In this document: positions 4,995 to 64,000 of the stretch, in pieces | How positions within the stretch are numbered: the first letter of the stretch is position 1 | How the letters are laid out: each line of letters begins with the position of its first letter | Assembly (NCBI GenBank): GCA_950097015.1 | Contig: CATNEN010000011.1 | Location: 4,340,001 to 4,404,000 of the forward strand | DNA from: Macrostomum hystrix | Lineage: Eukaryota; Animalia; Platyhelminthes | Direction of reading: 5' to 3' | DNA: 64,000 nt | Made by a program: the position numbers and the translations under genes | Notes under the pieces: generated by a model | Told to the model about the DNA's origin: nothing | Databases searched by the model: none | The model's input: the letters and a program-made list of their open reading frames with translations, nothing else

Positions 4995-5008
4995 GTTGCC
5001 ATGGCAAC
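4995..5008. promoter_or_regulatory. Perfect RFX X-box palindrome GTTGCCATGGCAAC in syd-1 intron 1
   Basis: Exact 14-bp consensus seen; function not shown. Confidence 0.4.
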
Positions 5009-7463: not shown

Positions 7464-7858
7464 TAAGGTGAAATCAGTCAGTAAGGTGTCGGACTCTGGA
7501 TCAGATGGTCCTGGGTTCGACTCCCGACCTAGTCTAGAACTATTCGTGCAGCCTTTGGCAAGCTGCTTTGCCCTGATGTGCACACAGTCTACTCAGCTGC
7601 AAATGAGTACCGACATTTCGTCGGGTAATAATAATTCCGGCTGGCGTGGAATAAAGCAGTTCTGTGCGGCAATTCTGTGGGGTTTGGATGCTGCCGATAT
7701 GTTTGGAAAAATAAATTCCATTGCTGACACGCGGCTGTCAACCGGTGTCCGAGAGAGCCGGGGAGTACAATAGGTGTGCAGTCCCCACCTGCTAGTGTGC
7801 CTGACACACAACACCTGCACTGGCCCTTGAGTCTAGTGTCAATTATTATTATTATTAT
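7464..7858 (+). mobile_element. tRNA-derived SINE
   Basis: tRNA-like head with A-box-like tcagtcagtaagg and B box gggttcgactccc; central cctttggcaag...cagtctactcagctgcaaatgagtacc block; (ATT)n tail at 7841-7858. Confidence 0.75.
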
Positions 7859-30356: not shown

Positions 30357-30957
30357 GCAAACTTACGCGTACATTGATGTAAACTAAATGCATAATGTCC
30401 AACGGAGCATCCTCAGGAACTCTAATTAATTGGGAAAGGATACTTGGACCTTTCACTCCTTTACAAGGCCTCTCCGGGACGGCGTCGATAACGTGCATCT
30501 GGTGACTGTGAAAGTCACGGAGAACGCTTCGATCTTGTTGAAAAGGAAATGTCATCTTTCGAAATTCATGTGAGTACTCTGTCATGTACTCACATGACCT
30601 AACTCACTCTGTCAGGCAAATGGTGCATCCGAATTTAGCATTGAAACTCTGCATGTTGAGAAATTCTGCTTTAGCAGGAAAGTCCGCTATAAATGCTACA
30701 ACACGTAGTATAACGGTGAAAGACTCAGTTTCGAATTTTAAATTAGACGTACTCTCTAGCACTGAGCGCAGAAACTTGCACTGCAAATTGGACTGCATCA
30801 TGTGGTACTTGCAATTCTATATGCTCATGAGTAGAATCCACAGCTGCATCGACTGATATATCTGATTTAGAACCAGAGGCTGAAGAAATCCGCTCTTCTC
30901 TGCGGCGTTTGGCTTTCCGCTTTGCAGAATAGGCCAGACTTTGGTTTTTTTTGGCAT
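30357..30957 (-). pseudogene. E2 transposase remnant with internal deletions
   Basis: Start MPKK.QSLAYSAKRK; fragments VAFIADFPAKAEFLNMQSFNAKFGCTIC and GVKGPS...APLDIMHLVYINV match the E4/E5 transposases; C-terminal half absent. Confidence 0.85.
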
Positions 30958-31536
30958 GGCAAACTTTTCTGAGGTGGCTGAAAAATTTAAATCTAATGAG
31001 TGGTTCTAAATTTTAAATTCTAAATTTCAATTCTAAATTCAAAATAAATAGCTTCTTTTAATTTATGTTTTAACATTGTAAGGACATAGGGTAAAATAGG
31101 AAAATCTTTAAGATTTATTAAAACCTCGATTTGCATAAATAAATATGCAGCTTTATAAGATTCATACCAAAAAGGTTTATGCAAAAAGGTGGTATACAAA
31201 GCACGAGGTGCTTTATAATTTGAAAAAAGAAAAGTATTGTATGCACTGTTAAAAGCAAAGCTGGCTGGCATAGCTTAGAATACATATTATAAATTGCAAC
31301 TCACTACTTGGGAAGTAAAGTTAGTTAGTCAGTTTCTAGTTACTTTTATTCACAGCTTCACTTAACAAAAAAAGTTTATTAATTCAAAGTAAATTTATTT
31401 GAAGCACTTTAGAAGATAACTTTTGTCTTAATCTGATAATTTGAATACAATAATGTGAAGTGCTGTGATGAAAAGCAGCAAGGAAATTGTCCATAAAAGT
31501 ATTACAAATGAAATAGTTAATAGTTTTGCGAAATAA

Positions 31537-34835: not shown

Positions 34836-36451
34836 TGGCTTGTTTTTTTTCCCGGGATAGCATGGTCTAATCAGGTTCTTTGCCAACATATCATCTAATT
34901 GAGCATCGACCTGCTTTTGAAGATGAGGTGGAATCCGTCTAGTCGGGATTCTCACCGGAGTTTCATCTTTCAATAAGATCTCATGCGTTACTAAATGGGT
35001 AAGTCCCATATCTAACTCATGCTGCGAAAACGCCTCTCGATATTCCTTCATCAAATCAATAACTGCCTTCATTTACTCTTCTGACAATTCTGATCCAATA
35101 CGGACTTCATCTATCCATGAATTCTCTTCTATCTGGGTCTGATTGACTCGTGCGGTGGGTGAATTTTCCTTCTCAGTCTGAGTAGAAAAATAAGCTAATT
35201 CCTTGGCCTTCATTGGCTTGGCCAATCCTACTAGTGCGGATTTCGACAAATTCACATCGACTGAATGTCGATTCACAATCTCTACAACAGCTTCACCTTC
35301 ACGCATGGTGACTAAAGTTGGGATCATTTCTAGCACTACTTCTTTAGCTCTAATTCCTTCCCCAATTACATCAATAGTCATAGGAGTACCATGATTGCTT
35401 TCTGCTCCTTTGGCAAGTCTCACTGGTATCCTTAATGCACTATTAGCAGGGATGGTGACTCGTTCTCTCGCATAAACGCGGCAAACTTTTACAGGCAAAT
35501 GTGTGAACTGCATAGGGATATAGGTCCCTTCCTTCATGACTAACATGCCTTTAGCTAGGTTAATACTTTCGCAATTCTCTAAGAAAAACTCCATACCTAG
35601 GATATTATCGCACTCATGACTACACAAGAGAAATTCGATCTTTACTTGAATGTCTCCAAATCTAACAGGAATGCTCACTTCACCTACTAATTGTACTCTT
35701 GTTCCATCAAAAGTAGAGATACGCTTTTCTGTCTGTTGAATTTGATCTGCTCTGACTAACTTAGTCCACACTGATTTGCTTAAGAAACTATTCCTTGCTC
35801 CTGTATCTAGAATAAAATTGACTTCCTTCTTTCTAACTTCTCCAATAATTACAGCTTCATAACCTTCAGGTTTTACTAGATCTACCTTAGATTGGATAAT
35901 AAAAGGTTTGAAGTGCCCGCTGGGAAAAAAGTAGGCGGCCCGACAGCGACGTCGCTGGCGGCATAGCGGCGGAACCGCCGGCGGCATGCGCCAAGGAAAG
36001 ATGGCGGCTCGCAGGCGATTTGTAGCAGCGACACCGCCGGCTTGCCGCCAGCCTTTCGGCATGTAGCGCTCGGGCCGCTGTCCTGCCGCCCGATACCCCG
36101 TACACGTAGCTCATTTGCCGCCGACTATCCGACTGCGATTCAGCAGACTGCATTTGCTTCCCATATACTTGTACACATACGTGCATTGCATATTAGGTTA
36201 TGCAAACTAGCGGCTAGATGTTTTCATAAGATCATGTGTAGTGTAGTTCAGACATGATTAAAATCTTACATCAGTGATGTGCGATTGAAAGATAGCAAAT
36301 GTAAAACTGCAAAAAAGGCGAACGAAAAGCAGCACAAATATTTTTTTAAGCCAAAAGTTAAGATTTTCACTGTAACAACCTTTTTGCAGATCATTTATAT
36401 TTCTGAAAAGAAGTAAGCGAAATAAAATATGCTAAGTCAATGGCCAGCTAC

Positions 36452-36978
36452 TAGGGTTGGCAGTCGGGGACTGGAATTCCCCGAAAAGTCGGGGATCCCC
36501 GATTTTTCCAGGTCCCCGATTCCCCGACTCCCCGATTTTTCCAGGTCCCCGATTCCCCGACTCCCCGATTTTGCCAAGTCCCCGATTCCCTGATTCCCCG
36601 ACTCCCCGATTTTTCCAGGTCCCCGATTCCCTGATTCCCCGACTCCCCGATTTTTCCAGGTCCCCGATTCCCCGACTCCCCGATTTTTCCAGGTCCCCGA
36701 TTCCCCGACTCCCCGATTTTGCCAAGTCCCCGATTCCCTGATTCCCCGACTCCCCGATTTTTCCAGGTCCCCGATTCCCTGATTCCCCGACTCCCCGATT
36801 TTTCAGGTCCCCGATTCCCTGATTCCCCGACTCCCCGATTTTTCCAGGTCCCCGATTCCCCGACTCCCCGATTTTGCCAAGTCCCCGATTCCCTGATTCC
36901 CCGACTCCCCGATTTCTCCAGGTTCCTGATACCCCGATTCCCCGAACCCCGAAAAAAATTCCCCGATTGCCAACCGTA
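36452..36978. mobile_element. hAT-type MITE filled with CCCCGA(T/C) tandem repeats
   Basis: TIR tagggttggcagtcgggga versus tacggttggcaatcgggga (17/19); 8-bp TSD ccagctac at 36444-36451 and 36979-36986. Confidence 0.9.
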
Positions 36979-39076
36979 CCAGCTACCAGTCTACCTAACA
37001 TGCGTTTATAGAGGAAATATAACAAACTCTGTTTCCTTAGGAAATGCGATAGCTTTACCTTCTGGTAAACCAGAAACAATAGTTCGAGAAACTGCATAAA
37101 TTCCTATATTAAGCAAACGCGAGGAATATGGATAACCATCTAACTTTTCTCTGAATATAAGTTGAGAACCAGTAAGTGCCATCTTTATGAATGGATTTAA
37201 TAAATATGTACTTATTATCAACAATCGCACAGTTATCAGGATAAGTGGTTTTGTAGGTGAAACGAGAGCAGCTTCGATTTGACAGAACATGTAAATCCCG
37301 CAGTAAAAGGGCTTGTCTACTAACATGGGAAAAACTACCACGGACCTGTCTCACTCGACGTTTTAGTGCACCCAAATAGTTTTCAAATGGAAAGGCGGAA
37401 AAAGAATCTAAGGGACCATATTGCTTAACAAAGTCAAATATATGCAAAATAGTATGAAAATTATATGAGACAGAATAGGAGCCAAACAACTCGGGAAGGT
37501 CGTAAACAAAAAGCCGAATAGAAGCTGCAGCTTGCTCATACAAATGCACCAGATTTTTTTAAGTAAAAGCATATATCGAAAAGCTTAAAAGCATAAAATG
37601 ACGAAAGTACCGTTCGGGCAGATAACTTTTAAATAAAAGAGGCCCTTAGTAAAGCAAAAGTGATCGAAACTTGGTGGCTTTGTAATGACCCAAGTCTTTG
37701 TCTAACCTCCTTGGAGGGCGGTGAAATTCGCATGGAAAGCACTTTCTATAAAATGAAATACTATCCGACAGTTTTAGAAGGTTGGCTACGGAAACCCTAC
37801 AGCGTAGACGAAAGGACTTTACTTTCTGAAAATACCACTGACACAATCGTTTTACAATTCCCAGGCAAATACAATGCATATAGTCAACAGGAAAATGAAG
37901 CAAAAGTGACACAATCTTAGCAATTGGTGATAACCTAGCCTGATTGTTCTCTTTACCCTCTGAGTATAAGCGGTCGTCGCGTGGGGTAGAAGCAGAGACA
38001 GGAAAAACCTTACGATCGTTCTCACGTTGAACTATACATCGATAATAACCACAACCATGAGCAGAAGTGTGACCGGAAATGCACTGTACAAATGCACGAG
38101 CTTGTGCGTCACAAATAAAAGTAAGATTTCCTAGTTTTACTAACTTACCCTCATACTGTATGCCGGTATCTCTCAATTGAATCATCTCATTGACAAAAGG
38201 TTCGAGATATTCATTTACATTAGGCTTCGTAAACCCATAGAACAACGCAACGGGCAGTATTACATTAGTACCATTAAAACGGACTAAAATGGGCCAAAGA
38301 GACGCATTACTGCTTTTATAAAGTGGTAAACCATCAATATTTATAGAACTATCAACAACAAAAACATTTGATTCCAAGCGACAGGAGTTAAGACTGAGGA
38401 GCCCCTTTTCAAAACAAAAAAATTGAATTCTCACGAATAGTCAAATAAGAAAATGTGCCTCCACACGTTAGTGTCGATGAGGGAGCCACCATTTTTGAAA
38501 CTCCCTTCATAAAAAGATAGTATGACTTCGGAACAGCAACTCCAACAAGACGCAACAGAAACTCAACGGCTGCGCGAGAAAGGTTAAACATGAGAAAAAA
38601 CATAATTAGCTCATTTACAAAATCGAACAGGGGCTCAGTAGCTGCTTCGTCAGCACCTTCGGCAGCATCAGGTTTGGCAGTCTCTTCGCCATCGGCCGAA
38701 CTATCCAATGAGTAGTAGCTGCAGCTAGAAGTCGCATTTGAATTTTCATCTGAGGAGATTGTCAAGACTCAAAGGAAGCTTCTTATAGCGAATATAACGA
38801 GTGTATTTGGGTTAAAGCCGCGCGTGCGAATAAGCCGTGTAGTCACTCTTACGTTTAGCTTGGGGGGGTAAAAGGGGTGCAACAGTTGAGGCGAAGCTTA
38901 GCTTAACGGGACCATAGACAGAAGAAGAAGAGAGAAGGCCGTTAGGGCCGGGCTGCTTTGACACTGCACAACATGTCTCCCTCCAGTCAAATGAAACAAA
39001 ACAACGAGCGCATGTGGCTATTTTTTTGTGGCTATGTTAGTCTTATCGGGAGGGCAACATATCAACCGTCACAGTG

Positions 39077-41010
39077 TCAGGGTGTGTATCGGTCTGGCTG
39101 TCGCCGATTTCGGTTACCCCTGCGCGGAACTTGATCTGCCACCGGAGCCGGTGGTGTCGGGGTTTCATTGGGAGGCATGTCTGCCGGCGGCTCCAGACTT
39201 TCGTCCTCGTCGTCCTCAGAAGTGCGTGAAAGCATCGGGGCAATCTGATTGTTGCTTGCCAGACGCAGTTTGTCGTCCGTCAGCAACCAGGATGTGTTGC
39301 GCCCTTGGGTCATGAGGAACTCTGCGCCTCGGGACGGGGTGTGGTCGGTGGCCTTGTATACGACCTGGTCACCTTGTTGGAAAGCCGAGACAACAGGTAC
39401 GCGAAGTCGTCGACCGAACACGAGCTCAGCCGGTGTCTTTGACCTTGCACCTGACGAGTTGCGGTGGTGAAGCAGAACCTTCTGCAAAAACGCAATGAAG
39501 TCAGAGTGGGTCAGTCTCTGTGTCCAGGCCTGCAGGGCCCTCTTGACAGTTTGGACTGCTCGCTCGGCCGCACCATTAGATTGTGGCGAGTAGGGAGGGG
39601 TTTCCATCTTTCGGGCGCCGTTGGCATGCAGCCAGGACAGCAGGGCATCAGACGTGAATTCCGGTCCGTTGTCGGAGACCACCACCTCTGGGACTCCAAA
39701 TCTCGTGAATACAGTACGTAACGAGCAAATAACCCTGTCTGCCGTCCTGTCGCGGGATGGAAAGGCTTCAATCCATCCGGAATAGGAATCCACTACAATG
39801 AGAATGTTGCCCACCTCGGGCACGAAGGCCCAGTCCATGTGGATGCGCTGAAATGGAGCATCAGCAGGTGGCCAAGCATCTCGGGACTTCTGCAGTCGGG
39901 GCCGCAGGCTGCTGCATGCAGCACACTGCCGCACGAATCGTTCCACGTCGCGCTGCATGCCGGGCCACCAGCAGGACAGCTCCAGGAGGTGGTAGCTGGC
40001 AGAAGTACCGCTATGAGTGTCGTGAATCGCATCGAAGGCCTCTTTCCGGAGACGCGGAGGTATGAATGCGCGCCGGTGCATGTAGAGGAGGCCGTTCTCG
40101 ATTGTTAGAGCTGCTGCGTTTCTCTTGAAAGCGGCCTCTGCTTGTGTGCAGTTATGCCAGTCGCCATTGCGTACGCGACGTATGATGCGCTGTAGCAGTG
40201 GATCAGAATCAAGTTCGCTAGCGATCCGTCGAGGATTGATAGTAGGGGATTCAAAGGCAACTGAGTTGATTGCCTCGAATGCGTCGGCCGGGTCTTGACT
40301 GTCATTATCAAACGGCAGACGAGAAAGCGCATCGGCATGCGGAATGCGCGATCCGGGAACGTAGACCACGCTAAAGTCTAATTGCATCAGGTAAAGGGCC
40401 CAACGACTGATTCTTGCCGATGAACTCATTGGTATGCTGCCACCGAAAAGCCGTAGAAGAGGCTGATGATCCGTCTGTACCGTAAATCGTCGGCCTTGGA
40501 GGTAGTGTTTCAGGCGACAGACGGCCCAGAAGATGGCGAGTGCTTCCCGTTCAATGTTGGAATAGTTAGTCTCGGCCTTGGACAGTGTCCTAGAGATAAA
40601 GATTACAGGGCGTCCTTCCTGGGTAACAACGCCTGCCAACGCTCCTTTAGAGGCATCTGTTGTGAGGGTCACCTCCTTCTCCAGGCTGTACGGTTGTACT
40701 ATTGGTCGTGATGAGATCTCCTTCTTGAGATTCTCGAAAGCGCGAGCACATGCTTCAGACCAGACAAACGGCGTGGATGCCTTGCGCAGTTCGTTCAATG
40801 GGGCGACCTTGGCGGAATAGTCAGGAATCAAGCGGCCGAAGAAATTCACCAGACCGAGAAATTGCTCGATCTCCTTCTTGGTCTTCGGTGTCGAGATGTG
40901 GCGAACTTTGTCCACGAGCTTATCATCGGGCCGAATTCCAGCGGCAGAAATTTCGAATCCAAGGAATGAAATCGAATCGCAAATGCCTGTACATTTGTCT
41001 TCATTAACCG
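39077..41010 (-). CDS. pol: G2 RT end, RNaseH and integrase (continuation after a 1-nt frameshift)
   Basis: FLGFEI, QFLGLVNFF, TDAS, IEREAL, TDH.PL, H..H...C..C, HMDW, VVDSYS, SDNG, SNGAAERAV. Confidence 0.9.
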
Positions 41011-42858
41011 TTACCTTTTTTCGGCCAGGCGCGTTTTGACTGCTTTCAGACGCTTCTGGAGTGCTTCAACGTTCTCAGCATAGACCATGATGTCGTCTTG
41101 ATAGATCAGTAGTCCCTTCAAGTCGGAGAGGATGCTCTCCATTGTGCGTTGAAAAATGAATGAAGCGTTTTTCATGCCCATCTGAAGGCGTTTGACGCGG
41201 TATAAGCCTCGCGAGGTATTGATGATAGAGATGCCTTGGGCGGATTCGTCCAGCTCGATCTGCCAGTAAGCCGACCTCAGATCAATCTTGGCAAACTTCT
41301 TGGCATTCTTTAACTTGCCAAAGAGGTGCTCGATGCTTGGAATAGGGTATGACTCTGGCTTTATTTTGTCGTTCACATGGACCTTGTAATCGGCGCACAT
41401 GCGCAACGTCCCGTCCTTCTTCTTGATCCAGACGACCGGAGAAGCGTTGCTCACAGGACCCTCCACAGGCTCGATGATGCCAAGCTGCTGCAGCCGGTCC
41501 AACTCTGCGTTGACTTGCTTCTCTAGTGCGATTGGAACCGGACGAGCACGGCAGAACTGGGATCGAGCGCCTTCAACCAGCTCCATCTGTGCCTTGATGC
41601 CCTTGATGGTGGGCAGCGTTGTAGCTGCAACTGTGGGGCTCGGAGCTTGAGAGTTGGTGTGAAAGAGAGAGTCGGAATCTAAAAGATCACGGCCAAGGAG
41701 GCCGAACGGCTTCAAAGACGAAACCACGACGAATTCGGCGGGGTGTAATCTACCCCGCATCTCGACGGTAGAGCACAGCTTGCCGAGAGTCTTTAGGGTG
41801 TGGCCGTCGTAGGCCTCGAGGCGTCGGTGACTCTTTTGCAGTGGGGGCCTGCCCAGAGACTCCCAGATTGTGCTAGAAAGCACGGAGACGGATGCACCGG
41901 TATCCACTTGCATTGGTACCTTGGCGCCGTCTACAAGAAGTGTCTCAGATGCAACTTCGATTGCGTTGACCAGATCAACGTCCATAAGATGCAGGATCTT
42001 CGAGGGCTCGGGCGTCATCGATGCATCGGATGGAACATCCGCGTGATGTACGGATTTGCTAGTCAGAGCAGAGCGGCATACGGCAGCAAAGTGGTTGCGC
42101 TTGGAGCACTTGGAACAGGTCTTGCCATATGCCGGGCACTTGCCTGCGTGATGGGATCCGCCACAGTACTTGCAGCCCTCGATGCGCTGACCATTGGAAG
42201 TTGGCCGTCCACCTTTGGAGTAGTGCACCGATTCGTCAGTGGCCGCATTATGTTGGGCTGGCGGCGACAATGGGCCAGCCGGGCCTACCGGGGGCACCGA
42301 GTTACAGGTTTGAACAAACGTGTTGATCTGTTCACAACTTCGAATGAGGTCAACAATCTCCGAGATTGTCTGATCCTTGGTTTGCATTGCACCGAGAATG
42401 CGCCGTTGATGCTCAGGGTTGTACAGTCCAGAAATGAGAGTAAGCCGCACCAGCTCCTCTGCGGGACTGGCGCAGTCCTTCAGAGAGTCAAAGGCGCAGT
42501 GCGTTGCTGCTTTCCTCAGGCGAGCTAAATAGTCTGCTATCGGCTCAGCAGCTTTCTGACGAATTGAGAAAAAGTCGGTTCTTTCGGCGACAATGAGGCG
42601 CTTCTGAGGTTGTAAGTAGGACACCAGGGCTGTCTCGATCTCTTGGAAGGTCAGCTTGTCGATCTCCTTCGGAGCGACGAGATGAGTCAGCTTCTCCAAA
42701 GCAGGCAGTCCGCAGGATGCCAAAAAATTGTCTGCGACTTGTCGGGATTCGGTCGAGTCGGTCCACTTCTTGGCGCGGGCCAGAGCATTGAAGGCCTTGA
42801 GCCACATCAGTGCACGGTCGGCATCGCCGAGAAAAAGGTCGCCAAGCCGCGACGCCAT
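41011..42858 (-). CDS. gag-pol: G2 Gag-protease-RT (N-terminal part of gag-pol)
   Basis: Tandem Cys/His knuckles CKYCGGSHHAGKC...CSKCSKRNHFAAVC, protease VDTGA, RT IDLRSAYWQ and YQDD. ATG at 42858. Confidence 0.9.
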   Translation of the reverse strand: MASRLGDLFLGDADRALMWLKAFNALARAKKWTDSTESRQVADNFLASCGLPALEKLTHLVAPKEIDKLTFQEIETALVSYLQPQKRLIVAERTDFFSIRQKAAEPIADYLARLRKAATHCAFDSLKDCASPAEELVRLTLISGLYNPEHQRRILGAMQTKDQTISEIVDLIRSCEQINTFVQTCNSVPPVGPAGPLSPPAQHNAATDESVHYSKGGRPTSNGQRIEGCKYCGGSHHAGKCPAYGKTCSKCSKRNHFAAVCRSALTSKSVHHADVPSDASMTPEPSKILHLMDVDLVNAIEVASETLLVDGAKVPMQVDTGASVSVLSSTIWESLGRPPLQKSHRRLEAYDGHTLKTLGKLCSTVEMRGRLHPAEFVVVSSLKPFGLLGRDLLDSDSLFHTNSQAPSPTVAATTLPTIKGIKAQMELVEGARSQFCRARPVPIALEKQVNAELDRLQQLGIIEPVEGPVSNASPVVWIKKKDGTLRMCADYKVHVNDKIKPESYPIPSIEHLFGKLKNAKKFAKIDLRSAYWQIELDESAQGISIINTSRGLYRVKRLQMGMKNASFIFQRTMESILSDLKGLLIYQDDIMVYAENVEALQKRLKAVKTRLAEKR

Positions 42859-43872
42859 TGTCAAGACTCAAAGGAAGCTTCTTATAGCGAATATAACGAG
42901 TGTATTTGGGTCAAAGCCGCGCGTGCGAATAAGCCGTGTAGTCACTCTTACGTTTAGCTTGGGGGGGTAAAAGGGGTGCAACAGTTGAGGCGAAGCTTAG
43001 CTTAACGGGACCATAGACAGAAGAAGAAGAGAGAAAGCCGTTAGGGCCGGGCTGCTTTGACACTGCACAACAGAGATATTGTCCTCCAAGTCAGATGCTC
43101 CTTGTTGATCAGCAACTCGATTAGCAGATGCTCCCTCTGGTGGAGAAGGCGTAGATTCCAATGAAGCACCTGAGTTAGCACCGATGGACACCAAGTTAGC
43201 GCCTGATTCATCAGCTGCAGCCTTGAGCAGTGCACTTCGCCTTTTTCGTTTAATTTGACTATATGGAAGACATCTGAAATTGTATGTACATGGCAGGTAA
43301 ATAATAAAACCTGGAAGCCCTATGTACTCCATAAAGGCTAAGAAACGTCCACGATGAGTTACAATTTAGGCATAGATGAACAGCACAAAATTACACAAAT
43401 GTGCTTATGCTCCTTACTGCTACATATGATAAATTTCATAACTTATAAAATGATTTGTCAACAAGTTTACATGACAGCAATGAACTTACACTAAGAATTA
43501 GATTGAACCCTTTAATTTTTTGCATTTTTAACAAAAAGCTGCACCCTTGAGCAGTGCATTTTTGCTTTATTAGACAATAGGAAAACGTCTACAATTGTTG
43601 TACATTGCAGATAAATAAAGAAAAACAATGAAGTCATATGTACTCCAGAAGGGCTTAAAACGTCCACTCCCTAGAAAAAAAAACAAGCTAAACTTTGTAA
43701 GTACTTACAAAGTAAACAATCAAAAGTCGTGACAAGTACCACCCAAGTGTACTAGGATGTTTTCATGGTTGACTTAGAAAGTAACCAAAGTTTGTTGCCA
43801 TGACTTACAAAGTTTACCATGTTTGACTGCCATGTACTTAGGTTGACTTGTAAAGTATATATTGTTTTCGTA

Positions 43873-44944: not shown

Positions 44945-47188
44945 CTAATCATGTTCGAAATCGTTTATCACGGGAATAGCAAAAGAGACGTCAGATAACC
45001 TTGTAGAAACTAAAACAAAGTGCTTTTGTAGGAGATCAACATTTACAGTGATGAAAAACCCAGAAGTTGATAACGAATAAATGGGACACATCTTTGTTAA
45101 AACGCCAACGACATCTTGGAATGGGACTTGCATTTCGCCAAAGCCAGCACGCAAACAAAAATCAATAGCACTTCGGTAAGCAAAGCACTCACAAAAATAT
45201 TTGTCATTGTGACGCAGGATTTTCTCGATCCGCAAAAGCATCTTCTTACAAGAGATGTCAGCCACCGCAAAGCAGCTAGCAGTTTGTCGATTGCTCTCAG
45301 CTCGTGCTGTTGTGAATGTTTTTCCGTTAACCGTGATTCGATTGCCTCGATGGTGCATCGAAGGAGCGGTCGGCTTGATGGCAGGACGCATTCGGCCAGC
45401 CAGCTTCCGTCTCAAGAAATTACGGATCATTATTTCAGCTTCGTTTCGCGTTCCGTGAATCTGCGAAACCAAACGGCCGAAGAAGCTTTCAAACAAAGCT
45501 GCAGAAGTACACCAGAGAGGCCCGTAAAGCTCTACTTGGGATGCGAGGTGTCGCAGTGCATGAATTGACATCGTACACGACTCTGTACCAAACCAGGCAG
45601 CAAGGCTAGCTTGAAAGCACTCAATCATACGTTCTGCCAAATTGAGATGTTCATAGGCAACACAGTCTGATGAAAGCAAATAGGTTGAGGTCGAAATGAG
45701 ACAGAATAAGAACATCAATCGCTTGGAAGCACCCGTAACCAACAGTAGCGGAAGAATGAAGTACAGAAGAGCATTCTTGAGCTCACTTGCTTTCCATCGA
45801 TTAAGATCTTCGAGCTTTCTTGGCTTTCTAGTGAAGCTTCGTGGCACCTTCACTTTCACGAGTTCTTCAGATACAGCTGTCTTATCTAGCAGCTTGTGCT
45901 TTATGCCGTAGTTAAGCAGTCGGCTTGTGACATTTATGTACACCAAATGCATCGCATCAAGTGGAGCCCCCTCAGGTACTCTGATCAACTCGGAAAGCAG
46001 TGTCGGACCTTTGACGCCTAGATGGGGCTTCTTTGGTTCCGCAATGATGGAATGCAGCTGATGAGTATGTGAATTCCGTAGAGGGCTTGGCTGCTCTAGG
46101 AACGGAAACGTCATCTTCCGGTACTCAAGCGAGTATACGCCTTCAATCTCACAGATAGTGCAGCCACGCTTGCCGTTAAAGTTTTGCATATTTAAAAATT
46201 CGGCCTTGGCAGGAAAATCTGCTACTAAAGCCAGAACACAAAATTGAACACTAAACGACTGGAGTTGGAATTGCAGCTTTGATGTATTTTCTATCAATAC
46301 CTGCAGAATCTCCTGGCCATCAGGCTTACATTCACCATAGTACACGGCAAGCAGAATAATGTTCTGCCATCGAAGACGGTCTCCTGGTGGAAGGTTGAGC
46401 ACTGCGAATGATACTGGCCATAGTTGACAACCTTTCGACTTTTGTGGAGTTGCAACACCATCAACATTCAACAGCACGTATAAAAACTTCGTGTCAGCTG
46501 TGTTCTCGTGCAAGCGAAATGCAGAGCCGCAAGTGATGTCTCGAAATTCCCCGTGTTGACGAACAGGCGCGAATTCGAACAATCTTGGGTATGTTTCGAG
46601 CAAAGTCTCTATCTGCAGCCTTGCATCTAACACGTAACAGGTCCCACCTGACACAGGCACCTCGATGGTTAGTTTGGCTTCTGCATTGCTTTCCTTGTTA
46701 AGGTCGTACAGTGTTGGACAACGATTGGGAATTGGCAGCACATCAGCAAACAACTGCAAAAACGTTTCTGCGGTGGCATCATCGACGCGGTGATCGGCTA
46801 CAGTGGAAATAAATCGCCTGCCAAATTCACCCACAGTAATCGCAGCGCTAGGATACAGGCTTTCAGACGACGAAAAGCTGGACTCTTGTGTAGAAACAGT
46901 TGCCTGCGGCTCGTCGAACGGAATGGGACTAGAACATCGGGCTTCCGACTGCAGTTGCTGTTCAAACTCAGATTCTGTTAGCAGAAACGGCGGATTTTGC
47001 TCCAATTCAGGTCCAGCAATGGTTGCAAGGCTCACTTCAGGTTCCTGCACTTCACTGGGACTGGGAGTCTTCCAAACGAGCGAATCTTCTGACAAAGGTG
47101 ACTCATGCGCAGAGCTGGGAGAAGCAGTCCTTTGTCGCTTTGAAGCTCGCTTTGCCGAATACGTGAGGCGCTGCTTCTTCTTTGGCAT
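44945..47188 (-). CDS. E4 CMC/EnSpm-type DDE transposase (747 aa from MPKKKQ)
   Basis: Uninterrupted ORF with LNVDG, LVADFPAK, C..C (GCTIC), PLDAMH, R.PR.L..L.RWKASE, H...HL..QV..YGPLW..SA..FES. The extra 105 codons upstream in the ORF track look like intron sequence. Confidence 0.9.
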   Translation of the reverse strand: MPKKKQRLTYSAKRASKRQRTASPSSAHESPLSEDSLVWKTPSPSEVQEPEVSLATIAGPELEQNPPFLLTESEFEQQLQSEARCSSPIPFDEPQATVSTQESSFSSSESLYPSAAITVGEFGRRFISTVADHRVDDATAETFLQLFADVLPIPNRCPTLYDLNKESNAEAKLTIEVPVSGGTCYVLDARLQIETLLETYPRLFEFAPVRQHGEFRDITCGSAFRLHENTADTKFLYVLLNVDGVATPQKSKGCQLWPVSFAVLNLPPGDRLRWQNIILLAVYYGECKPDGQEILQVLIENTSKLQFQLQSFSVQFCVLALVADFPAKAEFLNMQNFNGKRGCTICEIEGVYSLEYRKMTFPFLEQPSPLRNSHTHQLHSIIAEPKKPHLGVKGPTLLSELIRVPEGAPLDAMHLVYINVTSRLLNYGIKHKLLDKTAVSEELVKVKVPRSFTRKPRKLEDLNRWKASELKNALLYFILPLLLVTGASKRLMFLFCLISTSTYLLSSDCVAYEHLNLAERMIECFQASLAAWFGTESCTMSIHALRHLASQVELYGPLWCTSAALFESFFGRLVSQIHGTRNEAEIMIRNFLRRKLAGRMRPAIKPTAPSMHHRGNRITVNGKTFTTARAESNRQTASCFAVADISCKKMLLRIEKILRHNDKYFCECFAYRSAIDFCLRAGFGEMQVPFQDVVGVLTKMCPIYSLSTSGFFITVNVDLLQKHFVLVSTRLSDVSFAIPVINDFEHD

Positions 47189-48611: not shown

Positions 48612-49631
48612 TCAAGTTCCAATGTTCTTGCGGCACCGAATTCCTCTGCGAATGTCGTTGCCAAGCTGATTGGCTGCATCTCGGGCAATGCTAACAGAAA
48701 CATCATCCTTGAGGAAGCGGCTGTTGACAGCTTTGAAAAACAAATTGCCTCGATTTGGTGACACCGAAGGGCGTGCTGTAGGCGTTTGCCTTTTGGTACC
48801 TACTCGGCAACTTTTAAGCTCATCATCTGTCCACAGATGGCGAGCTAGCAGAATTCCATATTCAGAAGGTGTAAGGTTGTTGTCCCCTAGCCTAGCTAGG
48901 TCAATATCATTGGCAAGCACTGGCACAATGTTCTCATTAGTTGCAACTTGGTGCTGGTTGGCAATTCCAGAGTGTCTACCAATTTCAGCAGACTTTCTTA
49001 GCCTTCTAGTTTCTCGCACTTGGGCCTCTAGAAGCTTCACAATTTGGCCATTCAAAAGGTTGGTCTTAGCAAGCCTTTTGTTGAGTTCCTTTAGCTGAAC
49101 AATTACTGGCACCTGAGCCTCAGACTGCATGCTTGACTCAACAACCGATACATTCCGATCTAGGTCCTCAGGGTCCTCATCCCCAGAATCATCAGCATGG
49201 GCTTCTTGTTCATCTTCACTGCTACTTGAAGATTTCTCAGCAGTTATAGCAGCAGAACCATTGGCAGCAGAATTTGCAATAGCATCAACATCACCAGTGC
49301 TATTTAGCAAAGATGAAAGATTAACACTTGATGTGTCCTGTCTACAACTAAGCTTGGACTCCAGTTGCCTCTTTGCTTGATCCAGGTCTCGTTCATTCGT
49401 GCTAGCAGCAACAACAGAACCAACATAATTGTTAGTTAGCTTGATAGTCGATTTCACATCAAGATTTCTAAGGTCGCAATTGCGCAAGCTAGCTGGCAAC
49501 AGATGGGATACAGATGACAATGTTGAGTAGGACTTATCTTCTTGAAAATATAATAAAACATATGAAACCATTGATGATTGCACTTCTGGTCTTCGGTCAA
49601 GAACCTTCTTGGTTCTTTTTGGCTCTTGCAT
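48612..49631 (-). CDS. E4 accessory protein, 339 aa: small N-terminal domain, acidic linker, coiled coil, C-terminal BEN domain
   Basis: C-terminal YGILLARHLWTDDELKSCRVG...PSVSPNRGNLFFKAVNSRF...SIARDAANQLGNDIRR fits the BEN pattern (L...LFT.EEL...LDP.....I...V...F......IN.KCR). Assigned by eye. Confidence 0.75.
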   Translation of the reverse strand: MQEPKRTKKVLDRRPEVQSSMVSYVLLYFQEDKSYSTLSSVSHLLPASLRNCDLRNLDVKSTIKLTNNYVGSVVAASTNERDLDQAKRQLESKLSCRQDTSSVNLSSLLNSTGDVDAIANSAANGSAAITAEKSSSSSEDEQEAHADDSGDEDPEDLDRNVSVVESSMQSEAQVPVIVQLKELNKRLAKTNLLNGQIVKLLEAQVRETRRLRKSAEIGRHSGIANQHQVATNENIVPVLANDIDLARLGDNNLTPSEYGILLARHLWTDDELKSCRVGTKRQTPTARPSVSPNRGNLFFKAVNSRFLKDDVSVSIARDAANQLGNDIRRGIRCRKNIGT

Positions 49632-54638: not shown

Positions 54639-56178
54639 GACAACCTGCAATATGGAAACAATAGTTCATGAATATGATAAAATTATCAGATTTAAAAGTA
54701 GAACATAATTGTGTAGGTAGAAGCCAATAATAATTAAGACATTAATATGTATTACCAAATAGCACAGTTTTTAGACAGAAGTAAATCTATTAAAATGAAT
54801 ACTTCAAATGCATATTTTTAGTTCACATATCAATTATATACGAGCGTATAATAGTTTATATGACCAGCCGTCAAGAAGTAGACACATTATAGAAGTTGTT
54901 ATAACCAGAATTTTATCCAAATGCAAGAACTTCATGCGAGAATTTTTCAAGGCTTTGATGTTGCAATGCCTAATAGTATTATAGAATATAGTTTTGCCTA
55001 GACCAGTCTAGGGATTTAAGACTTTGCTATAGTGCAAGATTTGGACTAGGACCTATAAAGAAACTTGAATCTCCATTGCAACCAGGCATGCATTAAATAA
55101 CCATACATATAAAGCATAGTAAGCTACAAATAAAAACTAGGAACATGCTAGACTTCCACATCTGGCAAAACAGCACTCAGCATAGGCCCTATAACCATAA
55201 AAAAATGTGTAAACCATAATTCAATTAAGATGCTATGCTACAATCAGAAACCAAGAATAATAGAACCTCCAACAGCAGAAAGTATCAAATCGGCCAAATC
55301 GCATATGGCATAAGCTAGGGCCTAGGCCTTACCGCCTTACTAATTCCGTACAAAAGTAGATTGCTGAGACTTAGTAAGCTATTGTATTAACAGCCCAGTA
55401 AATAGTTCCACATAACACTCCATATCTTCAAAAGTTTAGTTTCACCCACCCTCAAGTCTTTCAAAAACGGTAGTACCACACGCTGTTTAAGGTAATAAAC
55501 TGGTAAAATAAAATGCAAAAATGCAGACAAAACGAACTCATGTATACGTTAATGACACGCGCAGACGCGAAAAGTCATTTAAAAATATACATTTTACACG
55601 ATTAAAAGTATCCAAATTTAATTTACATCAACAGAAAAGTAAAATGACTTAATACAAGATCAATCGATTATCAGTTCTCGCAAAATTAATTTTAAGCAAT
55701 TTTATTTTGTTAGTTTCGTTAGCTGCGGCAATCGGGCTAAAAGTAGCGGGACTGCCGCCACGGACTGCTACGCTCGCTGACAATAGTAGTAGTCAGCTAT
55801 CGCCGCAGTTTTGCCGAAAAAATTATTATTGATTTATTGGCTTAGAACGATCATAAATGCATCGATCATTTGTTCTTGAAGCTTAAATCGATTTTAAATT
55901 GCGATTTTGCAAGGTTAAAATTGAAATCGCAGAAGCAGCGACGGTAGCATTCGGCCCGCTGTCGGGCCGCCGAAACTTTTCCCAGCGGGTGTTTCTTTCC
56001 TGTCTTCGGCTTCGTGACTTCCGATGCTGCTTCCTCAGATGCTGTTTCTTCGGACTCGGACTCCTCAGGCTCGGACTCTTCAGATGCTGCTTCAGCCGTT
56101 GTCGCTAGTGTTGACACTGGTGCTGACATCTCAGCTGCTGATTCTGACACAACTGGAGTATTGACACTAACTAGTGCT

Positions 56179-56311
56179 GACGCATTTCTAGCATAGGGTG
56201 CAGACGCATTTCTAGCATAGGGTGCAGACGCATTTCTATCATAGGGTGCAGACGTATTTCTAGCATAGGGTGCAGACGCATTTCTAGCATAGGGTGCAGA
56301 CGCATTTCTAG
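56179..56311 (-). repeat. 24-bp coding tandem repeat (about 5.5 copies, RNASAPYA) in the G1 gag-protease linker
   Basis: gacgcatttctagcatagggtgca repeated. Confidence 0.85.
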
Positions 56312-56420
56312 ACTTATGCAAACGCGAATTATAAAAGTTTTGAGTATGAACATTGGGGCATTGTCTAGCTGAGGCTTGATATTCGTACATGGTTTTCCTA
56401 GAGGGGCGGGGCCTCGAATC

Positions 56421-57326
56421 TCAGTTTCCCTGATTTTTAGCCGGGTACTGACTCTGTTGACCAAACTTCGGCTTGTAGGGTCGGTAATTGCCATGCTGTT
56501 GCTTATGGCCCTGATACGGATTCTGCGGCTTATGATAAGGCTGCTGAAAACGCACTTGATGCTGCATTAGCGGCTGAGGCTGCGGATGCTGCTTCTGGGC
56601 TTCCACCATTCTCTTCTCCTGAATCAGGTTCTGATTTAGTCTTTTCTGCTTCTCTAGATCTTGTCTCTGCTGTTTAATCACTTCTTCTAACTTACTCTTC
56701 TGTTCCTCACTGTCTTCATCCTTCATCATTCTAACTCCATTCTTGTGCGACATGTTCCAGGCTGCCTCAATTCTTCTTAGCATTCGCCTCGCCTCTTGCA
56801 GGCTGGCTGGCTGAGCAAAAATAAGCTTTTCCCTTGTGTCAGAGGGAATCCTAGCTCCTTTAATAAATTGTTCTACCACTTCTTCTTCTCTTTGCTCAGC
56901 GTTCATGTTCGGGAACGCTCTTGCTGATAATTCTATTAGCGCGTCGGCATACGAGTCGGTTGGCTCATTCTTGCCCTGATGCCTACCTCTGAACTCATCT
57001 CTGAACTCAGCAGAGCTGCCTAGTCTACCAAAACGTTCAATCAGCCTATCCTTAAATTCCTCATAAGTTAACTCTTCAGGCAGATTGAGTCTTTGAACAG
57101 CTGCAAACGCAGTTGATAAATCTAAATTGGCTAAAAGTTCTCTCTTCCTGTGGTCATCCTGCTCTAGACCTTCGGTATCACACCTCTGGTCGAACGCGGT
57201 TAACCAGATCCTAATGTCTTGGCTAGGAGTATATTTTTGTATCTTAATATGTCTCATTGGCCCTAACTCTAATCTGTTCCTTAATTCTTCTGCTAACAAT
57301 CCAATAGCATCATTGATTCCGGCCAT
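56421..57326 (-). CDS. gag: G1 Gag (capsid-like)
   Basis: WL..FD.RC...L...Y.E.K..L.ERF....S.EFRDEF..R.Q...E..D.Y...L.EL..RAFP...V.EQFIKG retrotransposon capsid pattern, with a Gln-rich tail. Confidence 0.85.
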   Translation of the reverse strand: MAGINDAIGLLAEELRNRLELGPMRHIKIQKYTPSQDIRIWLTAFDQRCDTEGLEQDDHRKRELLANLDLSTAFAAVQRLNLPEELTYEEFKDRLIERFGRLGSSAEFRDEFRGRHQGKNEPTDSYADALIELSARAFPNMNAEQREEEVVEQFIKGARIPSDTREKLIFAQPASLQEARRMLRRIEAAWNMSHKNGVRMMKDEDSEEQKSKLEEVIKQQRQDLEKQKRLNQNLIQEKRMVEAQKQHPQPQPLMQHQVRFQQPYHKPQNPYQGHKQQHGNYRPYKPKFGQQSQYPAKNQGN

Positions 57327-57964: not shown

Positions 57965-58320
57965 CTTAAATCACTGAAACAAAGAACAAGAAGCAATGTT
58001 ACTGTGAAACAATATTTAAGGGATTCGTACATTGGTGAAGACGTCTTTTTGGTACGAATATTTTTGTCAGAGTATAGATTATACTTACAGTAAATTCGAC
58101 TCAGTTATATAACAGCATTAATAGTACACTAAAAAGAAGTAATTTAATAGATAACCCGGGAAAAAAAAACATTGTAAACTTTTAAAGTACTTGAAAAGTC
58201 GACATTGAAAAAGAATGGCAAGTATCAGTACTCATACTTTCCAAGTTTACAATGTTGTCGATCGTGGTAACTTTTGAAGTCATAAGAAATATTAGAAATA
58301 GGAATGAATGTTTCTTTCTC

Positions 58321-58957
58321 AGACTTTAAAAGTATGCTCTGCATGTATCCAAGTAACAGTGCTGACTTTCAAAGTATGCTCTACATGTATCCAAGTAACA
58401 GTGCTGACTTTCAAAGTATGCTCTACATGTATCCAAGTAACAGTGCTGACTTTCAAAGTATGCTCTACATGTATCCAAGTAACAGTGCTGACTTTCAAAG
58501 TATGCTCTACATGTATCCAAGTAACAGTGCTGACTTTCAAAGTATGCTCTACATGTATCCAAGTAACAGTGCTGACTTTCAAAGTATGCTCTACATGTAT
58601 CCAAGTAACAGTGCTGACTTTCAAAGTATGCTCTACATGTATCCAAGTAACAGTGCTGACTTTCAAAGTATGCTCTACATGTATCCAAGTAACAGTGCTG
58701 ACTTTCAAAGTATGCTCTACATGTATCTAAGTAACAGTGCTGACTTTCAAAGTATGCTCTACATGTATCCAAGTAACAGTGCTTACTTTCAAAGTATGCT
58801 CTACATGTATCCAAGTAACAGTGCTGACTTTCAAAGTATGCTCTACATGTATCCAAGTAACAGTGCTGACTTTCAAAGTATGCTCTACATGTATCCAAGT
58901 AACAGTGCTGACTTTCAAAGTATGCTCTACATGTATCCAAGTAACAGTGCTGACTTT
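58321..58957. repeat. E5 left subterminal array, 42-bp unit, about 15 near-identical copies
   Basis: actttcaaagtatgctctacatgtatccaagtaacagtgctg. Confidence 0.95.
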
Positions 58958-58960
58958 TAC

Positions 58961-61900
58961 TACACTATGTAATGAGAAAAACAAAAAAGCAAAGGACACA
59001 AAAAAGCAACATGCATTAGAAAAGCTGAATTATTGAAAATGAAATGCTTTATTCCTACATACAAAACAAAGTTAATTAATCAAGCTTTATTAAAGAGTAC
59101 ACATTCTGCATGAATGCACTTTATATTGACATTTTTGTGAGAAACAAGGTTGAATTAAAAATACTATTACATTAATGCAAATTTTAAATGAGCAAAGAAC
59201 TTAGTAAAATGGTCATGAGAGGATGTCAAGAGGCTATAGCTATTGCATTGAAGAGTATAATTGAAAAGTAAATTTGAAACACATTTCATAGATTCTATAT
59301 ATTAGATGGCACTTATTAGAAGTCAATGACATTTTTTATTTTAAAGTGCTTTAAAATAATGATTTTATTGAAAATTGATATTTTGCATTGCAGTTTCGCT
59401 ATGGATATAAGACAAAAGCATAGTTGCAACTTTTAAATTGAAAAAAATGAATAGCGCAAGTTCTATTGAAAACAAAATAGCATAAAAACTGCTGCACATG
59501 GCAGCATGGGATAAACCATTCCAACAAGCACTTAACTTGAAGAGCATTGCAAATAAAAATGGAAAAAATGAATAAAAATGTATTTGTTTAGCAAATGTGC
59601 ACAATATGCACTAAATATGCACAATAATCTATAGACAAACCCAATCCCTACAACTAAGCATATGTAAATATGCACAGCAATATAGATTGAGTCTATCATA
59701 TTGCTATTATGGCATACATTTTTATAATAGACCAGAGTCTAGTGCAACAAAACATGCTTCAATATCAAGTCTGTGCACTTCATAAAATGTTATAATGTTA
59801 TAATGAAAAATGTTATAATTCAAAGACAGCTTCAAGTATGATAAAACATTTTATATAGGCCATAGTGATTAAAAGTCTTGAAGAATCAGCAGTTGTTGAA
59901 AATGTAGACAATGCTAGACAATTAGCCAATGCTTGGAATTTGGAAGTCATCCTTCCTAGAACGAATTCCTCGTCGTAGATCATTGCCTAGCTGCACGTAT
60001 AGAGCAAGAAAGAGATTAAAAAAATCTAATCGTGCTCAAAATTATTAATGACGGGAACAGCGAAAATATGTCTCCGAGAACGAGAACGGCACACAGCAAT
60101 GAAATGTGTCACAGCACATTCAGACTTAACAGCAATAGCGCAGCCGCCAAAAAGTGAAAAAAATTGCAAATGCTTTTCAAGCAGAGGCATTGCATTGCGA
60201 TGCAGCATGTCGAGAGAAGCGAATTTGCCTCGCAAAATGAGATCCCTACGATAATAAAATAGGTGGCAGAGAAAGAAGAAAGTGCAACCACGGCGTACTA
60301 TCTCATTAATGCGCAAAAAGTAAAATTCACCTGCGATTTTACAGACAGCCAGGTGTGACACAGTTCTTCGATCCTTGTCGGCGGCTGCAGTTGTGAAAAC
60401 GTTCCCATTCACACAAAGACTGCGAATTCCTCCAAGCTGTATAGAATCCCGAGAAGGCTGAAGGGGTTGAGCATCCGCTCCGGCACCAGATCTGGCGACA
60501 TCATCAGAAAGTTTTCTTCTGATGAATTTTTTGATGAGCATAGTCGCTTCGTTGCCAGTACCACGAACTTGTGACATAAGTTGACCGAAAAAACTTTCAA
60601 ACAGGGCTGCTGAAGTCGCCCAAAGTGGTCCATAGAGCGATACCTGGTCTGCCAGATGCGAAAGAGCGTGCACAGTCATAGTACATGAAGCTGTGCCAAA
60701 CCAAGATCGGAGATTATATTGAAAACATTGAATTAGCAGTTTTACATCCGATAGGTGCGAATTCGGAATGCATGCGCCGGACAAAACATATACTGAAGTT
60801 GAAATGAGAGCTAGTAAGAAAGCAAACTTGCTGCAGCTTGCTTTCATCACCAGCAGGGGAACAATGAAGTAGAGCAGAGCGCTTTTTAGTTCATTTGCTT
60901 TCCATCTTTTCAGAACGTCTAGGCGTCTGGGCTGGCGAGTAAACTGTCGCGGCATCCTAATGTTTATCAGAGCATCTGAGATGTCGATGGGATCGAAAAG
61001 CTTATGCTTCTCTCCAAATACCAGCATCTTCCTAGTAACATTGAGATATGCCAGGTGCATTATGTCCAGTGGCGCTCCAGTCGGCACAGGAACGAATTTT
61101 CTTAGAAGCGTCAGCCCCTTCACACCGAATACTGGCTTGCGAGGAGTAGCAGCATGAGCATGGATACGATGGATCCTACTTGATCGAAGAGTACCACACT
61201 GTGCTTCGGGTGGATACGTCATTTTTTTATAAGCTTGATTATATTGGCCTTCGACAGGACAAATTGTGCAACCTGTTCGCGAGTTAAATTGCTGCATATT
61301 CAAGAAATCTGCTTTTGCCGGAAAGTCAGCAATGAATGCCAGAAACGACAGCCTTACATTCACAGTGTCAAGCTGAATGCTAAAGTCGCCTAAGTGGGTT
61401 TTGACAACTTCTAGAAATTTCTGGGCATCCGGCTTAGTTTCACCATAATAGACAGCCAGTAGAATGATATTTTCAAATCGTCTTCTTTCTCTCGGTTCGA
61501 GATTCACAACAGCAAGAGACATTGGCCATAGATGAAATCCCTTCGAAATCTGTCGCGTTGCAACGCCATCAACGTTGAGAAGCAAATAAAGCCACTTAGC
61601 TGAAGTGGTATTTTGCTTGAGAGAAAACATGCTTCCTGAAGTGATGTCGTAATAATTGCCATCATTGTGCACAATCGGAGGCTCCAAGACTGTTGGATGC
61701 TTGTCAATCAGATTTTGCAGTTGTGAAGCCAAATCAAGTAGATAGCAGACACCTCCCACAAGCTGAACCTCACTAACATTACGAATTTCAAGTGTGCTGT
61801 CTGAATTAATTTCGTACATAGTTGGGCAGCGATTAGGCCTTGGGAGGATTTGTGCAATTAAAGTCAACATGGAGCTTGTACCAGCATCAGAAATACAGTG

Positions 61901-63979
61901 TCTAGTAACAACAGAAAAAAACTGCCTTTTGAAGTCAGTCACACTACACTCTGCTCCATTGTACAAAGTCTCCGAGGATGACACACTATCTTCATTGGAC
62001 CCCGAAACGTCAGCAGATGCATCTTCATAACCATCAAAGCAGATAGGGCTGCTTACTCTCGGAACATGTGCACATTGCGCAGCTTCAGTCTGAAGTCCTT
62101 CTTGAAACTGTTCTAGTGTCAAGGGCACTTGAAAATCTTCATTTGGCCCAGAAGCAGGGTGGACAAACAGTTTGTCCTCTTCACTAGAGCTTGACAATGA
62201 TGCGTCTCGCTTGCAACGCTTTGATTTTCTGGCGATAGAATATGTGTGCCTTGTGCCACGAAGGGATTGCTTTTTCTTCCGCGGCTGAAAAAAGAAGGGA
62301 GATATTTAAAGTTTGATTTATTAATACATAATACATTCATGATTTCCCCAGGATGTGCATAGTAATGCAAATGCATAGCATTTACCTGACATAAAATTTT
62401 TTATTAGCACATAGTTGTAAACCTATATGCCCATTGCCCACTTAGAAACCCAAAATCATCTTAGCATTCAATGTACCCTAAAATTTTAATATACAATTTT
62501 AATTAAAACCTCTATCTGTTACTTGCCTAAACCCTATATGTAAGCAACTTACAATCTGCATGCCCAGCAGCCCTGCAATAAAATGTTATGCACTTATAAT
62601 TTTGAGATTAAATGTGCTTCTAAATGTAAAGCTTATTGTAGTCAACTGATAAGCATACAAGGCATATTATTATACCCCTCTAAAGTTAAAGATTAGTACT
62701 AACTACATTTGACTCAAACGTATAAACATGGAATAGGCTACTCTATCATCATTGCATATGAAATAAGTAGTCAAAAGCAACTGCTTATATATGACAAGCA
62801 TAGAAGAATTGAAATTGTCATTACAAAGGGCTGTACGATTTACACTCTGTAATGAGAAAAACAAAAAAGCAAAGGACACAAAAAAGCAACATACATTAGA
62901 AAAGCTGAATTATTGAAAATGAAATGCTTTATTCCTACATACAAAACAAAGTTAATTAATCAAGCTTTATTAAAGAGTACACATTCTGCATGAATGCACT
63001 TTATATTGACATTTTTGTGAGAAACAAGGTTGAATTAAAAATACTATTACATTAATGCAAATTTTAAATGAGCAAAGAACTTAGTAAAATGGTCATGAGA
63101 GGATGTCAAGAGGCTATAGCTATTGCATTGAAGAGTATAATTGAAAAGTAAATTTGAAACACATTTCATAGATTCTATATATTAGATGGCACTTATTAGA
63201 AGTCAATGACATTTTTTATTTTAAAGTGCTTTAAAATAATGATTTTATTGAAAATTGATATTTTGCATTGCAGTTTCGCTATGGATATAAGACAAAAGCA
63301 TAGTTGCAACTTTTAAATTGAAAAAAATGAATAGCGCAAGTTCTATTGAAAACAAAATAGCATAAAAACTGCTGCACATGGCAGCATGTGGTAAACCATT
63401 CCAACAAGCACTTAACTTGAAGAGCATTGCAAATAAAAATGGAAAAGTGAATAAAAATGTACTTGTTTAGCAAATGTGCACAATATGCACTAAATTGAAA
63501 AAAACTTGTAAGTCATCATGAAATATTTCTTATTAGGGATTTCACATGTTTTAAATGTCAAATAAAATTTTAAAAGACAATTTGGCAAGCACTAAATATA
63601 AAACCCACAATAATCTATAGACAAACCCAATCCCTACAACTAAGCATATGTAAATATGCACAGCAATATAGATTGAGTCTATCATATTGCTATTATGGTA
63701 TACATTTTTATAATAGACCAGAGCCTAGTGCAACAAAACATGCTCCAATATCAAGTCTGTGCACTTCATAAAATGTTATAATGTTATAATGAAAAATGTT
63801 ATAATTCAAAGACAGCTTCAAGTATGATAAAACATTTTATATAGGCCATAGTGATTAAAAGTCTTGAAGAATCAGCAGTTGTTGAAAATGTAGACAATGC
63901 TAGACAATTAGCCAATGCTTGGAATTTGGAAGTCATCCTTCCTAGAACGAATTCCTCGTCGTAGATCATTGCCAAGCTG
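58961..63979. repeat. About 1-kb direct repeats (58961-59993 and 62841-63979) flanking the E5 transposase
   Basis: Near-identical. The second copy has about 106 extra bp between gcactaaat microhomologies near 63486-63597. Confidence 0.92.
60026..62284 (-). CDS. E5 CMC/EnSpm-type DDE transposase (752 codons, no ATG of its own at the homologous start)
   Basis: LNVDG, FIADFPAK, GCTIC, PLDIMH, RWKANE, YGPLWATSAALFES; collinear with E4. Frame stays open up to the acceptor at 62285 and reads PRKKKQSL. Confidence 0.9.
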   Translation of the reverse strand, partial: PRKKKQSLRGTRHTYSIARKSKRCKRDASLSSSSEEDKLFVHPASGPNEDFQVPLTLEQFQEGLQTEAAQCAHVPRVSSPICFDGYEDASADVSGSNEDSVSSSETLYNGAECSVTDFKRQFFSVVTRHCISDAGTSSMLTLIAQILPRPNRCPTMYEINSDSTLEIRNVSEVQLVGGVCYLLDLASQLQNLIDKHPTVLEPPIVHNDGNYYDITSGSMFSLKQNTTSAKWLYLLLNVDGVATRQISKGFHLWPMSLAVVNLEPRERRRFENIILLAVYYGETKPDAQKFLEVVKTHLGDFSIQLDTVNVRLSFLAFIADFPAKADFLNMQQFNSRTGCTICPVEGQYNQAYKKMTYPPEAQCGTLRSSRIHRIHAHAATPRKPVFGVKGLTLLRKFVPVPTGAPLDIMHLAYLNVTRKMLVFGEKHKLFDPIDISDALINIRMPRQFTRQPRRLDVLKRWKANELKSALLYFIVPLLVMKASCSKFAFLLALISTSVYVLSGACIPNSHLSDVKLLIQCFQYNLRSWFGTASCTMTVHALSHLADQVSLYGPLWATSAALFESFFGQLMSQVRGTGNEATMLIKKFIRRKLSDDVARSGAGADAQPLQPSRDSIQLGGIRSLCVNGNVFTTAAADKDRRTVSHLAVCKIAGEFYFLRINEIVRRGCTFFFLCHLFYYRRDLILRGKFASLDMLHRNAMPLLEKHLQFFSLFGGCAIAVKSECAVTHFIAVCRSRSRRHIFAVPVINNFEHD

Positions 63980-64000
63980 GTTTATAGCATCCCGAGCAGC
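63908..64000 (-). CDS. C-terminal end of the E5 BEN accessory gene
   Basis: AARDAINQLGNDLRRGIRSRKDDFQIPSIG* matches the E4 and E2 endings (IARDAANQLGNDIRRG, AREAANQLGNDLKRG). Confidence 0.85.
   Translation of the reverse strand, partial: AARDAINQLGNDLRRGIRSRKDDFQIPSIG

Follow-up and report, generated by a model that had tools for sequence, protein, structure and literature searches.

Results

A two-exon gene model for the E5 transposase

The transposase gene of the transposon E5 is predicted to be a cis-spliced gene with two coding exons, whose product would start M-Q-I-P-R-K-K-K-Q; we put the probability of this reading at about 70%. E5 lies at one end of the window, which is the whole 64,000-nt stretch of M. 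hystrix DNA analysed herein. Its long reading frame has no ATG of its own, and the initiator methionine is almost certainly supplied by splicing, as judged from the features described below. The original prediction was that a host spliced leader (SL) would bring the start codon. One part of that claim stood, in that the acceptor looks real and the methionine splice-borne. The SL is less likely to be the source than a cis-spliced exon. Cis-splicing from an upstream ATG-bearing exon, which had been offered as the alternative, is the reading we favour, as a mini-exon with a GTAAGT donor was found 268 nt upstream. The sequence features of E5, their phase, their rarity by chance and the integrity of the ORF were read directly, and from these we infer the use of the splice sites in RNA.

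The minus strand reads tctcccttcttttttcag followed by CCG CGG AAG AAA AAG CAA, with the acceptor G at 62285 and the CCG codon from 62284. This agrees with the junction and the PRKKKQ start that had been reported. As also reported, an in-frame TAA lies seven codons above the junction (62308-62306), and the frame then reads I S P F F F Q without an ATG. After the junction, the ORF begins PRKKKQSLRGTRHTYS and is intact over the 752 codons claimed for it (open 62284-60029), with the stop at 60028-60026 by translation. The predicted exon 2 (60026-62284, minus strand) contains these 752 sense codons plus the stop; it starts PRKKKQSL and has no ATG of its own. The N-terminal 145 codons ahead of the first internal methionine are open and similar to those of the sibling element E4, and the C-terminal FEHD is the same as in the relatives in the alignment. 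The phase-0 acceptor sits directly before the first sense codon, and no in-frame genomic ATG lies between it and the last stop, which is the arrangement of an slORF. A TTG start at 62197 in the ORF listing was rejected as an artefact of the bacterial code.

The minus strand 268 nt upstream reads, in order, ttattgcag, GGCTGCTGGGC, ATG CAG ATT and GTAAGTtg. This is consistent with a first coding exon of 20 nt (GGCTGCTGGGC ATG CAG ATT; 62553-62572, minus strand), with the ATG at 62561-62559 and a G at position -3. The predicted 268-nt intron (62285-62552, minus strand; GC 0.30) runs from the GTAAGT donor at 62552-62547 to the acceptor ctcccttcttttttcag ending at 62285. The donor is in phase 0 with exon 2, the ATG stands 9 nt before the donor with no intervening stop, and the predicted join gives M-Q-I-P-R-K-K-K-Q-S-L. 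In the proposed mechanism, the mini-exon would contribute the ATG plus two codons (M-Q-I) up to its GTAAGT donor, the AT-rich intron would be removed, and the acceptor at 62285 would join the mini-exon in phase 0 to the 752-codon exon.

The donor scan covered the 1,716 nt upstream (64000 to 62285). The only GT[AG]AG in this stretch was the mini-exon donor, which has the full GTAAGT consensus. As a control, 5,000 first-order Markov shuffles of the upstream stretch were scored for a GTAAGT with an in-frame ATG. Such a site was found 40-300 nt from the acceptor in 1.4% of trials and at any distance in 8.6%. Among the weaker upstream GT sites, an in-frame ATG was present at the chance level (25 of 85), and these sites were dropped as E5 donors on that account. 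In addition, the 99 nt ahead of the 62285 acceptor contain no other AG, a zone that is unusual for such a composition and typical of a working acceptor.

The splice sites were compared with those known from the genus. In M. lignano, GT[G/A]AG is the top donor motif (122,399 of 187,627 sites; PMC8629364), and the mean intron length in Macrostomum is 558-1,114 nt (PMC8629364, PMC10468722). The TTTCAG at 62285 agrees with [T/C]TNCAG, the acceptor motif of M. lignano. In E5, a consensus donor and a pyrimidine-tract acceptor with an AG-free zone occur in matching phase, and the predicted intron has a length and composition common in Macrostomum. As predicted, E5 resembles genes whose first coding exon is very short: its ATG is followed by two more codons and a consensus donor, and the short intron would end at a phase-0 acceptor ahead of the main ORF. 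E5 differs from such genes in being a transposase gene, and its closest siblings in the window lack an intron there.

The acceptor-like sequence cataacattttattgcag (62573-62590, minus strand) adjoins the mini-exon, with its acceptor G at 62573; it is a candidate for the acceptor of a 5'UTR intron or of SL trans-splicing. Two points count against the mini-exon: the AG-free stretch at this site is just 18 nt, and the exon itself is small (20 nt). The -3 position holds a purine at the ATGs of the E5 mini-exon (G), E4 (A) and E2 (G), whereas it is a U at the SL AUG.

Comparison with the sibling elements E4 and E2

The absence of an ATG was not common to the two siblings in the window, since E4 and E2 each carry one. 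E4 starts ATG CCA AAG AAG AAG CAG, with the ATG at 47188-47186, and its product begins M-PKKKQRLTYS, as the original prediction had read it. E2 starts ATG CCA AAA AAA A, with the ATG at 30957-30955, and then continues QSLAYS after a one-base frameshift in the A run, in line with the M-PKK.QSLAYS given before. In this part of E2 (30940-30980, minus strand), ATG CCA is followed by a run of eight A, and the E4-homologous frame, NQSLAYSAKRKAKRRR, is off by one base there. The shift is either a frameshift of a decayed copy or a homopolymer error.

An acceptor-like site was found above the ATG in all three elements: cttccag at 11 nt in E4, tttttcag at 20 nt in E2 and ttattgcag at 11 nt in the E5 mini-exon. 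As a base rate, 2,325 ATGs across the window were scored, and a YTNCAG stood 5-25 nt upstream of just 4.65% of them. With an acceptor 11-20 nt above the ATG in E5, E4 and E2, the three elements seem to share one arrangement (an acceptor, then a short leader and the ATG), to which E5 would add a single intron. This intron would take the place of the ATG in E4 and E2, which encode M-P-K-K-K in one piece, and the E5 ATG would lie nine bases further up. Since the mini-exon and the ATGs of E4 and E2 all come after an acceptor-like site, the transposase 5' end in E5, E4 and E2 is probably joined by splicing to something further upstream. That partner could be a 5'UTR exon, or a host SL acting on a two-gene transcript.

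The E5 mini-exon GGGCATGCAGATT and the E4 5'UTR GCCCAT-CAAATT show a short resemblance; homology between them is suggestive, the match being too short to count as evidence. In E2, a GTGAGT donor lies at 31304 (minus strand), 327 nt above the acceptor at 30978 and between the partner-gene end and the transposase ATG; this points to an intron in the E2 5'UTR, preceded by an exon of its own. In E4, no GT[AG]AG was found between the partner gene and the acceptor at 47200.

Architecture of the E5 element

E5 spans the sequence from near position 58160 to past 64000. Read along the minus strand, it comprises the partner-gene 3' end, repeat A, the mini-exon, the intron, the transposase, repeat A', a 42-bp array and an E4-like end, in that order. 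The 3' end of the upstream partner gene (63908-64000, minus strand) was identified by tblastn with the E4 partner protein and by translation; it reads AARDAINQLGNDLRRGIRSRKDDFQIPSIG / LGNDLRRGIRSRKDDFQIPSIG, followed by a stop at 63910-63908. The remainder of the partner gene is past the end of the window. The E4 partner protein (48612-49631, minus strand) matched no Pfam family at E <= 0.001.

Self-comparison by blastn located repeat A (62841-63979, minus strand), which comprises the last ~22 codons of the partner gene and ~1.07 kb downstream, and its second copy, A' (58961-59993, minus strand), which begins 33 nt past the transposase stop. The two form a direct repeat of 1.0-1.1 kb, 97-99% identical, that flanks the transposase module, and A' includes the last 22 codons of the partner. 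The duplication shows that this copy of E5 is rearranged; it may represent an abortive gap repair or a duplicated 3'UTR. The A' copy of these 22 codons is preceded by a pyrimidine tract and CAG. A YTNCAG acceptor-like site is also present at 62847, 6 nt before the end of repeat A, and its CAG is CAT in A'. We considered whether A' marks the last exon of the partner gene, which would place the transposase in an intron as in En/Spm. This was rejected as unsupported, since the upstream copy reads through from AINQ into LGND with no GT donor there.

The 42-bp tandem array (58322-58957; 15.1 copies, 98% matching) has ACTT-N3-AAGT-type palindromes in each unit and probably serves E5 as its array of 3' subterminal binding sites. 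It is far more regular than expected of a decayed end. The sequence at 58160-58227 resembles the E4 end at 43674-43741.

Other parts of the window were annotated as well. A host gene for a SYDE-type Rho GAP (PDZ, C2_SYDE and RhoGAP domains) has exons at 1647-10069 on the plus strand. A Gypsy-type retrotransposon region (35073-42864, minus strand) carries ORFs for aspartyl protease, RT, RNase H and integrase with an H2C2 zinc finger, and includes a second protease ORF at 35073-36062. Pfam gave no match for two neighbouring ORFs (301 and 174 aa; 55866-57326, minus strand) that lie just beyond the end of E5.

The transposase belongs to the CMC group

The E5 product matches DUF1258 above threshold (1.5e-11, 44.7 bits vs. 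a cut-off of 33.1), and its match to Transposase_21 is weak, with 17 bits under the cut-off of 28.6. The E4 transposase (44948-47188), to which E5 is 48% identical, gives the same pair of Pfam matches. On these profile matches, we assign the E5 transposase to the CMC/EnSpm-Mirage kind. In a seven-protein alignment of relatives, E5 keeps all 90+ invariant columns, and the conserved core is kept as well, including the acidic residues of the NxDG, ADxPAKA and FE(S/N) motifs and the Cys/His motifs. The one notable departure is at residue 577 of E5 (60029-62284, minus strand), which is G in the GTRNEA motif, whereas it is R in six relatives including E4.

A search with the full-length protein returned relatives of at most 38% identity, on marine metagenome contigs only, each with its own ATG; all of these distant relatives have their own methionine and a basic N-terminus. 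The N-terminal 180 residues used as the query gave no match. No transcript-derived E5 protein was found in the full-length or N-terminal searches of this large collection.

E5 is like the CMC superfamily (CACTA/EnSpm-Mirage-Chapaev) in its matches to DUF1258 and Transposase_21, and in having a second gene upstream together with arrays of short subterminal palindromes. In maize En/Spm, TnpA and TnpD are produced from one unit via alternative splicing. E5 would share with En/Spm a transposase coding exon reached by splicing, but the partner gene of E5 stands apart as a complete ORF that ends in a stop of its own, and no donor common to the two genes is visible within the window.

The spliced leader as a source of the start codon

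The SL of M. lignano is 35 nt long with the 3' end TTGCATG, and its trans-acceptors fit [T/C]TNCAG (PMC8629364). Those of M. cliftonense and M. hystrix resemble it closely, likely with the final ATG included (PMC10468722). The statement that flatworm leaders end in AUG is correct for M. lignano and probably also for M. hystrix. Flatworms have been known to use the SL AUG as an initiator since the work of Cheng et al. 2006, as cited in PMC12582326 and PMC9851317. According to the passage in PMC8629364 that cites Conrad 1993, an acceptor is predominantly trans-spliced only where an upstream cis donor is lacking. With as many as 6 mismatches allowed against the M. lignano SL, the 64,000-nt window yielded no SL gene.

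E5 resembles the slORFs of flatworms in that its ORF lacks its own ATG, a phase-0 acceptor lies directly before codon 2, and an ATG-ending SL is known from the host genus (M. lignano). It differs from them in having a cis donor and an in-frame ATG 268 nt upstream (ATG CAG ATT and GTAAGT; 62561-62547, phase 0), with which the SL is not required. In addition, the gene is that of a transposon and not of the host.

The SL could in principle act on this message, and we considered two sites at which it may be joined: the 62285 acceptor in part of the transcripts, or the acceptor above the ATG of E5, E4 or E2. We regard it as rather unlikely that either occurs. In the first variant, the leader AUG would start an M-P-R-K-K isoform alongside the cis-spliced M-Q-I-P form. 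In the second, at 62573-type acceptors, the SL would resolve an operon of the partner gene and the transposase. Joined at 62573, the leader AUG is computed to be out of frame and to open an overlapping uORF of 62 codons; the E4 equivalent is a uORF of 56 codons. Such uORFs of 56-62 codons would throttle transposase translation. If the leader is used at all, the 62573 acceptor is a better candidate site than 62285.

A stronger claim is that SL trans-splicing at 62285 is the main route and that the leader AUG initiates M-P-R-K-K-K-Q. We regard this as distinctly unlikely. The M. lignano SL ends in ATG, as that of M. hystrix likely does, the TTTCAG fits the trans-acceptor motif, and a leader AUG is an established initiator in flatworms in the work of Cheng et al. 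2006 as cited above. The prediction that trans-splicing gives exactly M-PRKKKQ was reproduced, as the SL plus exon 2 forms a 753-codon ORF with an MPRKKKQ start, matching the M-PKKKQ of E4. However, a perfect in-phase cis donor with an ATG lies 268 nt upstream, and acceptors of that kind are normally cis-spliced; the SL may thus act here, yet the start is explained without it. Both siblings in the window carry an ATG of their own, and a search for RNA sequencing runs covering 61500-62700 listed no run. The last result also counts against the SL route, but it is weak evidence of low expression and does not separate the models.

The same absence of a listed RNA run would fit an inactive copy, in which an in-line ATG was mutated away, the splice look-alikes are accidental and the ORF is intact owing to youth. 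The A/A' rearrangement and the G in place of R (six relatives) in the GTRNEA motif point in the same direction. On the other hand, 752 codons are open to the native C-terminus, including the E4-like 145 codons before the first internal methionine. The 99-nt AG-free, pyrimidine-rich acceptor and the phase-0 GTAAGT with its ATG are also jointly improbable by chance. Overall, we find an inactive copy improbable.

The least probable of the readings joins the 62284 exon to a donor outside the window, within the partner gene or ahead of it, as an En/Spm TnpA/TnpD-style alternative product of one transcription unit, so that the transposase N-terminus would be shared with or fused to the partner protein; E5 is a two-gene CMC-type transposon whose 5' part lies outside the window, and En/Spm works by such logic, but no GT[AG]AG occurs from 64000 to 62573, which includes the visible 3' end of the partner gene, the visible partner ORF has its own stop, and the local mini-exon already accounts for the start.

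Discussion

On the present evidence, the start of the E5 transposase appears to be an ordinary gene structure, with a tiny ATG exon and an ordinary intron. The main value of the analysis is a corrected gene model, in which E5 is predicted to have two coding exons and a product starting M-Q-I-P. If it were true that the leader supplies the AUG, a cut-and-paste transposon would need host trans-splicing to make its enzyme, and this SL dependence would couple element and host in a new way. The cis-spliced model we prefer carries a caution for animals with trans-splicing: where an ATG-less ORF begins at an acceptor, a search for a micro-exon should come before the leader is invoked. Of remaining interest is that three diverged elements conserve an acceptor-like site only a few bases upstream of the transposase ATG.
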